A stretch of DNA of 64,000 bases, taken from the NCBI GenBank assembly GCA_004431415.1, contig QPMI01000279.1, forward strand, positions 1 through 64,000. Direction: 5' to 3'. Below are positions 30,365 to 38,131 of the stretch, one piece after another. Numbering within the stretch: the stretch's first letter is position 1; every line of letters starts with the position of its first letter. The position numbers and the translations under genes are program-made. This DNA comes from Cyanophora paradoxa CCMP329 (Eukaryota; Plantae; Glaucophyta). Under the pieces are notes generated by a model. The model did no database searches, had not been told where the DNA came from, and saw nothing but the letters and a program-made list of their open reading frames with translations.

Positions 30365-33300
30365 CTAGTCGTCCGGATCCAGTTCGATACAGACGGGGGC
30401 CTTCGGGGGGGCCTTTGGGGGCAACTCATCGATAAGCTCGTATTCATCCAAGTCGATGACCTCCGGAACAGGCTTCTGGCCAGAGGCCGGCGCCTTCGAG
30501 GAGGCAGCCTCGCTGCTGGAGGCGGAAGCGGAGAGGCCGGCCGGGGACGGGGAGCGGCCGCAGTTCGACGGACGCGCCGGCGGGGTGGGCGAGGCGCGGG
30601 CACCTGCGCTCTCCGAGACGGGGCGCTTGTCGATCATTGTCTTCGGCTTCTTGCCTTGCGGCTCGGCGGCGGGCGGCGCCTGCAAGGACATCAGGGAGGG
30701 CACGGAAGCATTGGCGGCAAGGGGGCGTACGGGGCGTGCGGCCTTCGCATGGCCGCTTCCGAAGGCGGAGGCGCCACCGACAGTGGCGCGAGGGGCGAGG
30801 AGGGGGCGGTGCTGTTGCCTAGAAGTGGAGCTCGCGGAAGGGGCCGAGCTGGCCGCCGCCTCGCCCCCCTTCGCTCCCTCCTGGAAGATGGGCTGGAAGC
30901 CTGACGCAGCCACCGACGCCGCGGCCTGCCCCACGGCCTGCACCGTGGTCGGAGTGGACGCCGCTGGCATGTCGGGCGACAAGGCCCTCTCGGCTGCCTC
31001 GCTCTCCGAAGCCGAGGGCGGCGAGGCGCGGAGGGCCACGTGCTGCTGCGGCTGCTGGGCCGAGGCGTGCAAGGCGCGCACTGGAGCCTTGCCCTTGCTG
31101 TCGGCTGCAGCTGGCTGTGCAGAGGGCGCTGGGGCTGACTGAAGAGAGGCGGCCTTCGGAGAGGAACTGGGCGCAGCCGGCTTGCCATCGAAGCCGGCGT
31201 TCTTTGCCCTGCAGCTGATGCCCATGCGAATTGGCCCAAGCAGGAGGTCGGCGGACGCTGCGGCTGGCGACGCCTGCGAGGGCACGGCTGACTGGGCGCG
31301 GGGCGGGGGATGTGCAACTGGAGCGGGTGCTGGGGCGGCAGGGTTGGGCTCCCGCGAGGTGGCAGCGGCAGCAGCGGCGGCAGCGGAGGCGGGATGGGAA
31401 GGGCCGGGCCCCGGCCCTGCCTCTGGGGGAATGCTGCTCGCTCCGGATCCTCCAGAAGCCGCCGAAGAAGCCGATGAGGGCGCACCCGGCGGACCCTTCA
31501 GGATGCCATGCATCAGCTGGCAAGCGCAGCCGGTAAGGACAGGAGAATGGCTTACGGGCTCAAAATACGTAAACGCGTCATCGACATCCATAGCTGTGTT
31601 CGACCTGCCTGCAGATGCCTGTGTGCCCACGCACAAAGGTGAGGAGGTCGTGATCAGCACACACAGTAAAGAAAGGCCGTGCACCCTTTCAACCTGCTCG
31701 AGCCTCGCTTGTAGCCGGCGAACCTCCCGCAATGCAGCTCTCTCCCCCTCCTTGGCTCGCCGCGCTTCCTCCTCCGCTTGCCTCCTGCTTACCTCCGCAA
31801 CATCCTGCCAGCCAGGAGGTTAAGAAGCGTACGATCTTGGCCGCAGATAACGTCTCGCGCGCGTACGGCAACAAAGACGAAGTCTTTCGTCGTTTGTTGC
31901 ATGCCGCGCCAGTAACTCTCCCCGTACTTTGCAAGAAGCTGCGGCACACGAATAAGGACTTTGAAAACAGCGTATGAGCCCGTTCGAAAGGGGCACCTGT
32001 TCCCCGGCCTTCACACTTCGCACGAGGATGACAAAAATTCGCGGCCTGGAGCTTTTGTTGGGAAATTCGACAATTTGCAGCAAAAACAGAGAGAACAGTT
32101 CTCACGCACCATCCATCGACAGTCACCTCAATGAAACCGACATTCGCGAAACGTTTGTTGCGGCGCCCCCTGACAGAGAATGAGAATGAAATCTGACGCA
32201 AGACCGTCAACTAATTCAGCAATGCACTTGACATCATTGATGCAGGCGGCCTCATTGAACTTCATGTTTGCGTTGATGAGTAGATTCTTGTTGTCGCCAT
32301 CGGAGCCAGGCCATCCGGGCCTCTCCGTCACGTCTAGAGTCATGTCGCTCCTGCGGCCGCGGAGACATTAATATATATATATATATATATATATATATAT
32401 ATATATATATATATATATATATATATATATATATATATATATATATATATATATATATATATATATATATATGTACAGGAGAAGAAATACTCACTTTCGC
32501 ATGAAGCGGACATCGACAGGAAGATGACTGTTATACTCGAGATCGTATTCGCCGACGTACTCGCATAGCACGATTGGACACTGCGGATCCCACAGCATGT
32601 CTTCCTTTGCAGCCACTCCGAATGAATTCCTGCACGAACGTGTAACGTCGCATGTTGATCATGAACAAGTCCTGGTCAAAAGCAGAAAATGTCGACTAAC
32701 CCATGTACAAAGTCGTAGGCAGGATCAAATCTGTTCGTGATTCGAACAAGCTGAGCAAGAGGGCAAGAATTTGTGAGTAAGATTATCAGGAGGGCGTAAA
32801 TGCGATCATGAGAAAGGACATTTCAAGCACTTTGATCAAGGAAGTGTTGCTACCACGGGGATGATTGCATTTGATGAAATCTTCTATAGCTCTTGTGTAG
32901 GCAAGCTTGTCCTGATCACTTGTTACAGAGCTTATGTGAAACAGTCAAATCAGATAAAAGAGAAAAGACCTGATCACGGATACGAAGAGTGGACTGCACA
33001 TGGCTCTCGTCGGATACGATCTTGACTTCTATGGGCCGTGATGGATCGACTGCACTCGGCATCGACCCCTTTCTGACAGGGCCTTGGCCGGCTGGCAGCT
33101 TCCTTAGTATTCTACGATACCCCTTCTGCTTCCAAACCCGGTCCGTCACTTCCGAGCGCCCGATGAGCTTTGCATGCGGCCCACGAGAGCGCAAAACTTC
33201 ATGGTCTGATGCATCTGGGAGGTCATGGACCTGGGCCTCTGCGCCCAGACGGAGAGAGATTTACTGGCTCTCATCATCGACAAAATATAGAGACGAACCG

Positions 33301-36300: not shown

Positions 36301-38131
36301 ATATTGGCACATGCTTGAGCTTCCGAACCTGCTGCTTCGTGAAGAGGAGTATTTCCCTTTTTGTCAAGAACAAACCCCTGCTGCAACTTCCTGCCAACCA
36401 CAAGCAGCTCGCTGCGTGGTGTTTCAGCCAGACAGCTGCAGCCGCTGAATTGAAGTGCAAAAACACGCACCGAACAACATCGGCGAGACCGTGGCATGAT
36501 GCAATCATGAGAGGAGGAAACTTTGCTTGATCTTCCATCGCGAACTTGGGCCGGAGCTGAAGGAGACGAACGGCAATCTTGACGCTTCTGTTGTCCATAG
36601 CCCAGTAGAAGGCAGAGAGACCTGAAAAGAAAGCCATCTGCTGTCAGAAAGCGATGGGATGTGCGTTCGCAGGAAGGGGACGGGGAGGGGAGGGGAGGGT
36701 GAGGGGTAGGGGGGGGGGAGAGGGGGAGAGGGGGAGAGGGGGAGAGTGGGGGCGGCTGCGGGCAGCATTAATGGGTTAGCGAGCACGGGTACAATCAAGA
36801 GCTGGCGGTGAGGAAGAGGTGAAATGATATTGAGAAAGCAAAAAAAGCGAGGAGAGATGCTGGAGAAGAGATGGAGTGTGTGGCAATCGCTAAGGCCAAG
36901 GTGGAGATATTAGAGAGCAATGCGCGGTAATGGTAAGGAGACCATCCGAGCGGGGGCAGAGAGGTGTGTTGTGTGTGTGTGCACGGGGAGGGGGGGGGGC
37001 GGGGTGGGGGGTGGGGGGATCTGAAAGGTGGGGGAAGGGGACTGTGTCTCTCTGTCGCCCGAGGATGGAGAACTAAGAGCTCCGAAGTGTCGGGGGCAGA
37101 GGGCAGGGCGAGATGTGGCGGAGGGGGGAGGAGGGGAGAAGGGACCGGGGAGAGAGCGGTGGAGGTAGAGGGAAAACGGAAGAAGCGGAAGAAGGCTGAA
37201 GGATGAGAAAGCGGGAATGCGGGGAAGGGCGGGAAGAGGGGGGACGGGGAGGCGGGGGAGGGCCGGGGGGGGGGAAGGGGGGGGGGAGGGGGAGGGGGGG
37301 GGGCGGAATTAGGGAGAAATTATTGCAGCTCCACACACCTTCGTTGTCGCGTGCTGCCAAATCAACTCCCCTGTCGTGCAAAATCTCGAGGCTCTTGCAG
37401 TTCTCATCGCATTCCGCCGCATAATGAAGAACTGCGCAGTGTCGACGTCAGCGCCAAGCGGTCGGCGCTCTTGTTCTAGCTGAAGAGCCTGGGCTCGCTC
37501 GCGGGATCGGAAGAGCTCATCGCTCGCTCTAGGAATCGGAAGAGCTCATCGCTCGCTCTACGTGAAAGCGCTGCGCTGGCGCCCGGCGGCGGATGAGCTT
37601 GCAAGAGCTTGCGGAAGACGAGATGTCGATGCAATCTTATGCCAGGTCGTGAGCGGCCTCAAGGCCGCGGCCGCAGCTAAGCGGGCTTTGCTGCGAGATG
37701 ACTGCTTGGCTTATGACAGCTTCACGATGCACCGCATGCTGGATCGTCCAGCGCGCACGGCATGGATCCTTAGAAGGGCTGCAAGGCAACGACGAACGGC
37801 CGGCCGCACGGCTTATGGTCATCGCAGCTGAGCGATGCTGGATGCACGTTGACGGCAATTTCTTATGCTGGATGACTGCGCGACGCACGCAAGCACGCCG
37901 AGATCTAGCCCCTAGAATTCAAATTTCAAAGCAGCGAGGGAGCGCACGCGTCCATTCCTCGGGCTTCTTTGTTGCCTTCAGATCGAATGCTTTGTCGGTC
38001 GCTATCGTGAGGAGGCTCGCAGGGTCCGACCGCAAGAAACCGCCTTCGCCCGCAAGGAGCCCGAGATGCCATCTGCGTTGGCCGCTCTCGAGCACGACGA
38101 CATCTCGAGGCGGCGCCGCCTTCTTAGGCAT
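30365..38131 (-). CDS. Multi-exon protein: ankyrin repeats - two AP2-like domains - SET domain - low-complexity tail with SIM-like motifs
   Basis: Ankyrin: VLHYAAE...[45 protein letters not shown]2-like: HIGVYED...[14 protein letters not shown]...KLN and [10 protein letters not shown]...[14 protein letters not shown]...LNRP. SET: FGVAAKED...[51 protein letters not shown]. 5' exons uncertain. Confidence 0.6.
32369..32472. repeat. (AT)n microsatellite, about 52 units, in a SET-domain intron
   Basis: Directly visible. Confidence 0.98.

Follow-up and report, generated by a model that had tools for sequence, protein, structure and literature searches.

Does one gene of Cyanophora paradoxa encode a protein that could bind DNA, write and read methyl marks on lysine, and dock on SUMO? 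The original prediction, made from the DNA alone, spliced fragments of open reading frame by eye into a minus-strand polypeptide carrying ankyrin repeats, two AP2-like segments, a SET domain and SUMO-interaction motifs (SIMs). Here the locus is analysed within its window, meaning the whole 64,000-nucleotide stretch of contig QPMI01000279.1. Sequence searches were run exon by exon, and then with the database protein P0001, either whole or by range.

Gene model and expression

30365..38131, minus strand: whole gene, 26 exons, 1,626 amino acids (RNA contigs and spliced frame)
37948..38131, minus strand: exon 1, with the start codon and, at its end, W60 in the ankyrin linker register; joint to exon 2 predicted from contig-length fit
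32371..32472, no strand: (AT)51 microsatellite in intron 20, inside the SET coding region, spliced out (sequence; contig loose end)

The predicted motifs all lie on the minus strand where expected, and fall in one frame once spliced. A scripted frame check of the 26-exon model found no internal stops, and all 25 introns are GT..AG. Read contigs were retrieved with positions 32480-36660 (4,181 nt), a query that leaves out the (AT)51 repeat and a poly-C intron. In two RNA-type runs from two studies, X15 and X17, exons 3–20 are carried by a single spliced contig per run (4,954 and 4,934 nt), which gives 17 joints, 15 of them listed and the other 2 deduced from record coordinates and the depth table; in DNA run X1 none of these joints was seen. 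Loose ends of the RNA-type contigs correspond to exon 2 (37370-37341) and, past the AT repeat, to the SET exon (32349-32320). The X15 and X17 contigs are long enough for the full model, leaving 61 and 50 nt to spare at the 5' end and 12 and 3 nt at the 3' end; the joint between exons 1 and 2 and the splicing of exons 21-26 are predictions that agree with this length fit.

This is one expressed gene, with one transcript that spans the ankyrins and reaches into the SET coding region. The spliced contigs exclude a pseudogene or separate genes. The proposal of a single polypeptide that combines ankyrin repeats, a SET domain and two AP2-like modules is upheld by the RNA contigs, the frame, and the profile scores and structural match given below. 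The gene is C. paradoxa tig00001187_g7464, for which the public model has 1,433 residues, omits exons 1-2 and adds introns. Both its start at 36637 and its intron within exon 17 are contradicted by the RNA-type contigs.

Ankyrin repeats

36093..37984, minus strand: ankyrin block 1, about five repeats, residues 50-205 (Pfam Ank exon by exon; P0001 E 1e-18)
35154..35636, minus strand: ankyrin block 2, residues 327-436, ending in ERFPSL (exon 8 above the Pfam Ank cut-off, E 2.7e-6)
36602..37954, minus strand: candidate methyl-lysine cage, W60 (37954-52), Y65 (37423-21), E68 (37414-12) and W99 (36604-02) (GLP repeat registers)

Ankyrin is the sole Pfam domain that passes the cut-off in P0001. Neither SET nor AP2 passes it, and both call for profile evidence. 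The ankyrins are present as predicted, though their extent differs: the register begins in exon 1 (about 37984) and forms two blocks, rather than the run of about 37430-35360 originally drawn.

The methyl-lysine cage of GLP consists of W874, W879, E882 and W912 (PMC13626213). The GLP ankyrin domain was absent among the PDB matches to exons 2 and 3, so the cage was compared through these published residue numbers. The spacing here is W/Y/E/W at +0, +5, +8 and +39, against +0, +5, +8 and +38 in GLP, such that Tyr replaces one Trp and one residue is inserted; W60 depends on the inferred exon 1-2 joint. The pattern occurred in none of 158 control pairs, and the product of background frequencies is 1.4e-4 per pair, with a bacterial background set and a comparison made post hoc. 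This candidate GLP-like cage in repeats 1-2 is a new observation. It provides a specific hint that the ankyrins may read methyl marks, as had been proposed by analogy with G9a/GLP.

AP2-like modules

34586..34941, minus strand: AP2-like core 1, residues 484-552, sheet net charge -3 (profile comparison)
34442..34585, minus strand: tail of module 1, about 48 residues, homologous to the module 2 tail (module pair E 9e-9)
33834..34110, minus strand: AP2-like core 2, residues 689-755, sheet net charge +2 (profile, language model, structure model)
33675..33833, minus strand: helical tail of module 2 (pLDDT 70-78, almost without alignment support)

The two AP2-like segments represent a duplicated module of about 125 residues, composed of an AP2 core and a helical tail. 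P0001 has no Pfam AP2 (PF00847) match, and a plain HMM of phage AP2 gives 0.3 bits. By hhalign, the two-module profile scores 25.1 against AP2 (probability 59%), compared with 9.5 +/- 2.0 and a maximum of 17.3 for shuffles. Scanned along the protein, the AP2 profile peaks at the two modules only, each single module lying at the edge of its own shuffle range. Language-model neighbours carry PF00847 at 0.89-0.90. The structure model of module 2, built from an alignment that included AP2 rows and is biased towards AP2, superposes on AtERF1 (Z 7.8, with an rmsd of 2.2 over 62 residues), WRI1 (Z 7.4) and TEM1 (Z 6.6). The next structural matches include AP2-like chains of the Toxoplasma mitoribosome, which we take to be AP2 proteins that do not act on DNA.

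The module resembles AP2/ERF domains (PF00847; AtERF1, WRI1, TEM1; phage HNH-AP2) in having three strands and a helix, G-x-x-G-[VI], an aromatic strand 2, a helix ending in G followed by LN, and a tandem pair; its helical extension also aligns to the WRI1 and TEM1 chains. It differs in lying below Pfam detection, in having lost most of the basic sheet residues, and in having an insertion before LN and the conserved tail of about 48 residues in both copies. An AP2 fold, or remote AP2 homology, is supported by a profile score above all shuffles and by the alignment-biased model, albeit without a Pfam match. The sheet charges of -3 and +2 compare with +4.9 +/- 1.9 in 48 phage AP2 domains: module 1 falls below the reference minimum of +1, and the module 2 sheet has one Arg. 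The loss of basic residues from the sheets makes sequence-specific DNA binding doubtful and weakens the case for the DNA targeting first envisaged.

SET domain

31906..32750, minus strand: SET domain, IND type, without post-SET cysteines (profile, language model, motifs)
Key residues, by motif alignment: Y1047 (32559), N1106-D1107 (32238-33), Y1150 (31926), W1155 (31911)

A SET domain is genuinely present, in divergent form, and begins at about 32750 rather than the predicted 32628. Pfam SET (PF00856) gives E 0.026 in P0001, under the cut-off. A held-out HMM of 30 IND-type SETs reaches 42.6 bits, while none of 500 shuffles exceeds 7.5; the set was picked by a query-derived pattern, with 33 of 33 rows matching PF00856, and L041, a contig from a human-gut sample, was left out of all analysis. 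This score is the second-weakest among the 33, and the N-terminal half alone has no HMM score. Language-model neighbours give SET at 0.95, and the best solved relative of the family profile is SETD8/KMT5A, with PBCV-1 vSET also found, weakly. Single-sequence AlphaFold reached a pLDDT of 32.

In motif I, GxG(x)F is here S-F-G-V-A, with the second Gly retained and the first Gly and the Phe replaced. Motifs II (Y-V-G) and IV (G-E-Q-L-L-A-K-Y) retain both active-site tyrosines. Motif III (RFINH) retains its Asn, with His changed to Asp and Arg-Phe to Ala-Cys, and the C-terminal Trp is retained. Differences from the rest of the family fall at GxF (F to A), D959, R968, F969 and E1010 (P0001 numbering), and several SAM-side residues are not retained. 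The sequence NEAACIND in place of the usual RFINHS had been pointed out. IND for NHS was found in 57 fetched loci, and such SETs are widespread, the His to Asp change being a common family variant; it is no peculiarity of this gene.

The domain resembles the small IND-type SETs of giant viruses, microbial eukaryotes and retrotransposons (e.g. L004, L014, L034) in IND, N-x-x-F, GE[EQ]L, YG-x-x-YW and the lack of a post-SET zinc site. The fetched ones are mostly stand-alone proteins of 150-350 residues; ours is embedded in a multidomain chain of 1,626 residues, and its motif I and the stretch ahead of IND have diverged further.

The SAM-side substitutions and the low held-out score, taken with acidic or weakly basic AP2-like sheets and structural matches to mitoribosomal chains, would fit a nuclear scaffold, in which the SET is weak or dead, the AP2-derived modules bind protein or RNA rather than a DNA sequence, and a complex is built around the ankyrins and the SIM-like tail. 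We consider this the strongest of the alternatives, though on the unlikely side, because the Asn, the Trp and the two tyrosines persist, 3 of 32 family members likewise have Ala in place of the motif III Arg, and the gene is expressed with its 26-exon frame intact.

C-terminal tail

31685..31804, minus strand: charged helical, coiled-coil-like exon after SET (sequence)
30464..31618, minus strand: Ala/Pro/Ser-rich low-complexity tail, predicted splicing (sequence)
30368..30463, minus strand: two SIM-like motifs in acidic context, VIDLDE (30460-30443) and VCIELD (30394-30377) (pattern matches)

A SIM pattern (hydrophobic core and acidic flank in a disordered region) finds both predicted motifs, which are its only two matches in P0001 and lie within the last 35 residues. 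They are putative SIMs, as motif matches. P0001 also contains basic clusters.

Comparison with known architectures

The layout had been called unfamiliar from characterised proteins, and a three-domain ankyrin-AP2-SET arrangement was indeed not found described in the literature searched. Pairwise precedents exist (AP2 with SET, ankyrin with SET), and the three-way layout is new as far as we have found.

Like G9a/GLP (EHMT2/EHMT1), the protein has ankyrins N-terminal to a C-terminal SET, and aromatic or acidic residues at four cage registers (PMC13626213). Unlike them, it lacks Cys-rich pre-SET and post-SET regions, its SET is IND-type and not of the Su(var)3-9 class, its candidate cage occupies repeats 1-2 and has a Tyr where GLP has a Trp, and it has two AP2-like modules, a second ankyrin block in between and a long low-complexity tail. 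Trithorax class III-3 SET proteins of green plants and algae carry an extra AP2 (PMC5725981), and so share AP2 and SET on one chain; they are PHD-SET(-postSET) Trx proteins without ankyrin. Glaucophyte Trx proteins are reported to have SET and PostSET only, and the Su(var) and E(z) classes were reported absent from Cyanophora in a survey of a draft proteome (PMC5725981).

Toxoplasma PCKMT (PMC13518913), which works at the cell apex, is likewise a large protist protein in which ankyrin and SET are combined with a proline-rich C-terminus. It has TPR and no AP2 and is cytoskeletal rather than chromatin-associated, and no sequence relation to ours was seen. This precedent, and a TPR gene lying head-to-head 270 bp away, would suit an active lysine methyltransferase whose ankyrins pick a non-histone substrate, for example a flagellar or cytoskeletal protein. 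Such a role seems improbable to us: gene adjacency is weak evidence, and the AP2-derived modules, SIM-like motifs and basic clusters point to the nucleus.

Relatives and genomic setting

No homologue of exon 14 was found among 1.8 billion representatives; P0002 is a chance match to a trypanosomatid repeat. Word-indexed sequence searches gave no homologue among the matches listed, within their length and word limits. None was found in viral contigs, in phages (the best match is interrupted by stops), or in PHROGs, NCBIfam and PDB sequences. These searches gave neither paralog nor ortholog, and the window holds no second copy.

The neighbouring TPR gene is presumably TTC29-like. Transposon ends were dismissed, there being no terminal repeats in the window beyond 13-nt GC-rich chance matches, and the window holds no target duplication, transposase or capsid neighbours. 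A mobile element or endogenous virus could have carried the gene as cargo (a counter-silencing gene), since stranded or domesticated. In favour are its AT-richer body (GC 0.43-0.54 against about 0.7 in its neighbours), a nearest fetched SET that belongs to a giant-virus genome bin (L004, 39% over 69 residues), another IND-type SET inside a Gypsy Pol (L034) and the AP2 of viral HNH endonucleases. This is the least likely alternative in view of the repeats and second copy missing from the window, one unbranched 4,258-nt contig over the region in DNA run X1, the 25 introns, host-like neighbours less than 300 bp away on either side, and unsupported tree placement beside L004 (85/43, long branch).

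Proposed function

On the basis of these observations we hypothesise, with a probability of roughly 45%, that this is a single-copy, expressed, lineage-specific chromatin protein arising from domain shuffling, which methylates, reads, anchors and docks on SUMO. The SET domain would methylate lysine, most likely on a histone tail, and Ala at the SET8-type switch position together with Phe in N-x-x-F may allow more than one methyl. Ankyrin repeats 1-2 would bind mono- or di-methyl-lysine via the GLP-like cage, which may give read-write feedback. The AP2-like modules may help to hold the enzyme on DNA or nucleosomes, a role likelier for module 2 than for the acidic module 1, with sequence specificity probably low or changed. 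The acidic SIM-like tail would tie the enzyme to SUMO-marked, probably repressive, chromatin. It would then act like G9a/GLP with a built-in recruiter, yet outside the G9a/GLP family. A bolder version, an independent G9a/GLP-like read-write enzyme assembled from unrelated parts, in which a virus/protist-type IND SET, its own ankyrin cage, sequence-specific AP2 recruiters and SUMO docking make a self-targeting, self-propagating silencer in a single chain, within a lineage reported to be without Su(var)3-9 and E(z), is a long shot.

Implications

Pfam-based surveys overlook SET and AP2 domains in the C. paradoxa genome, and the public model omits, with exons 1-2, part of the coding sequence of the candidate cage. 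To our knowledge, G9a/GLP are the only established ankyrin-cage read-write methyltransferases, and they depend on separate DNA-binding partners. If our proposal is true, a convergent ankyrin-cage writer with its own AP2-type anchors would show the reinvention of heterochromatin writers, in an early-branching archaeplastid whose surveyed proteome lacked the Su(var) and E(z) classes (PMC5725981).

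Gene model and transcript

The gene was modelled as 26 exons on the minus strand (38131 to 30365), encoding 1,626 aa with zero internal stops and GT..AG at every intron. Run types (RNA or DNA) were assigned as a guess; 54% of genomic words are present in four RNA-type runs and 42–43% in two more, as against 99% in DNA runs. Over 32480-36660 the RNA-type runs X15 and X17, from two studies, each gave a single contig (4,954 and 4,934 nt, respectively). These contigs carry 17 splice joints, which read CT..AC on the plus strand and agree base for base with the gene model; the DNA run X1 has none over this interval, which indicates that X15 and X17 are RNA. 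The loose ends of the contigs lie upstream in exon 2 and downstream in exon 21, beyond an (AT)51 intron, and in length the contigs exceed the model by 61 and 50 nt at the 5' side and by 12 and 3 nt at the 3' side. Given the joints, loose ends and lengths, the ankyrin repeats, both AP2-like modules and the SET domain belong to one transcript, as in the original prediction, whose sequence observation as a whole is confirmed. We infer the joint of exons 1 and 2 and the splicing of exons 21-26.

Introns 1 and 2 are much longer than the remaining 23 (56–144 nt); intron 1 contains a 29-nt tandem duplication (37493-37560), and intron 2 consists of a 717-nt C-rich low-complexity stretch (36672-37308). 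Intron 10 (34864-34939) has AAG instead of YAG at its 3' end, the joint being backed by RNA.

A search with exon 14 found the public protein of this gene, P0001 (EukProt Cyanophora paradoxa tig00001187_g7464.t1, 1,433 aa), a singleton cluster. It agrees with the model over exons 3-25, apart from an intron within exon 17, which the RNA contradicts, and its tail, which differs from that of the 26-exon model. Lacking exons 1-2, it begins with an internal ATG. Pfam identifies ankyrin in P0001 and nothing else. Protein and viral-contig searches found no homologues of the gene, the queries being single exons or P0001.

Genomic context

The gene is richer in AT than its surroundings, and both flanks are host-like genes. 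No terminal repeats were found around it, and no second copy within the window; over the region the DNA run assembles into a single unbranched contig, which suggests that the gene is single-copy. Two neighbouring features are:

38402-40281, plus strand: intron-rich TPR gene, head-to-head with the SET gene, the two start codons being separated by about 270 bp
27497-28075, plus strand: WD40/DCAF4-like β-propeller fragment, two genes downstream

The TPR gene, which looks TTC29-like, possibly shares a promoter with the SET gene. The window also holds a perfect 300-nt direct repeat (10888-11187 and 11260-11559, 372 nt apart), which is a recent duplication or an assembly artefact, and an array of 24-nt tandem units (17749-18276).

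The SET domain

The direct Pfam match of the SET region is weak (E 0.026), and a protein language model places the region among SET clusters (0.95). Relatives were fetched with the DNA pattern I-N-D ... G-E-x-L ... Y-G-x-x-Y-W, which gave 5 viral and 53 metagenome loci; 57 were analysed, L041 (on a contig named as human-gut metagenome) being left out. An open frame with the motif is present in all 57, and all 33 aligned rows of this IND-type SET match PF00856. The original prediction pointed out NEAACIND in place of the usual RFINHS; Asp for His is common to the fetched loci and is therefore a widespread variant, not a peculiarity. An HMM built without P0001, from a set chosen by the query-derived pattern, scores the P0001 SET at 42.6 bits (shuffles ≤ 7.5), and gives no score for its N-terminal half alone. 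The best solved match of the family profile is SETD8 (E 6.5e-20). The closest fetched relative, 39% over 69 aa, comes from a giant-virus genome bin:

L004, 6367-6840: stand-alone IND-type SET protein of 157 aa

A tree pairs the two, but without support.

With motif definitions and the F/Y switch taken from PMC9487757, the residues kept are the motif II Tyr, motif III Asn, N-x-x-F, motif IV Tyr and terminal Trp, while those altered relative to the family are the motif I Phe, the Asp before motif III, the Arg-Phe before IN and the second Glu of GEEL. Methyltransferase activity is likely but not certain.

Among the fetched loci, L034 (9-3767) encodes a Gypsy/chromovirus-type Pol (RT, RNase H, integrase, chromodomain) in which Pfam places an IND-type SET between RNase H and integrase. 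A tight family of GC-rich IND-type SET proteins of about 157 aa recurs in many metagenome contigs (L009, L015, L026, L031, L033, L038, L044, L047, L051 and L053).

The AP2-like modules

Modules 1 and 2 are copies of one module of about 125 aa (30% identity over 94 aa, E 9e-9), the similarity taking in a tail of about 48 aa. They were compared with 120 phage AP2 domains fetched with an independent pattern, 47 of 48 aligned rows of which match PF00847. In hhalign the two-module alignment scores 25.1 (probability 59%), against 9.5 ± 2.0 for local shuffles (maximum 17.3); singly the modules score 20.5 and 21.8, at the edge of their own shuffles. A scan along the protein peaks at modules 1 and 2 only, and in the language model module 2 has small AP2-bearing clusters as its neighbours (0.89–0.90).

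Given an alignment that includes AP2 rows, AlphaFold models module 2 as three strands and a long helix, followed by a helical tail (pLDDT 76). This model resembles AtERF1 (Z 7.8, rmsd 2.2, 62 aa), WRI1 (Z 7.4, 93 aa) and TEM1 (Z 6.6, 88 aa); because the alignment steers the fold, this is compatibility with the AP2 fold and not proof. AP2 ancestry of both modules is probable. AP2 domains read DNA with their β-sheet; the sheets here are poor in basic residues, module 1 having a net charge of −3 and module 2 of +2, where phage AP2 has +4.9 ± 1.9 (minimum +1). Sequence-specific DNA binding is doubtful, and for module 1 unlikely.

Ankyrin repeats and C-terminal tail

Pfam finds the ankyrin repeats in two blocks. 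Repeats 1-2 are encoded in exons 1-3, half of them being absent from the public model, and contain W60, Y65, E68 and W99, which match the registers of the GLP methyl-lysine cage in the G-x-T-P-L-H-x-A frame. The GLP numbers were placed in this frame by assumption, from their spacing. In GLP the cage residues are W874, W879, E882 and W912 (PMC13626213; cage also described in PMC9329655). Across a set of 449 bacterial repeats the frequencies of these features are 0.062, 0.234, 0.091 and 0.102, respectively, with a product of 1.4e-4; the pattern, even relaxed, is absent from all 158 pairs of adjacent bacterial repeats. Given about six pairs and the relaxed pattern, its chance is roughly 0.5%. Since the test was post hoc and the background bacterial, not eukaryotic, the candidate cage is a good lead and not a finding.

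The SET domain is followed by a charged helical exon, about 400 Ala/Pro/Ser-rich residues and, at the end, two SIM-like motifs, which are the sole pattern matches in the whole protein.

Comparison with known systems

Ankyrin with SET is found in G9a/GLP, and likewise in Toxoplasma PCKMT (PMC13518913). Unlike G9a/GLP, the C. paradoxa protein has neither pre-SET nor post-SET, and so is not a member, though it may work in a similar way. Trx class III-3 proteins are recorded as combining AP2 with SET (PMC5725981). No description of ankyrin, AP2 and SET in one protein was found in the literature searched, mostly outside subscription journals. A survey based on a draft proteome reports the Su(var) and E(z) classes as absent from Cyanophora (PMC5725981).

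The original interpretation is partly supported. A full sequence-targeted silencer that reads and writes methyl marks and docks on SUMO is improbable. The best reading, to which we give a probability of roughly 45%, is that the protein may associate with chromatin and be active in methylating lysine, its ankyrin repeats serving as a reader and its AP2-derived modules as anchors.
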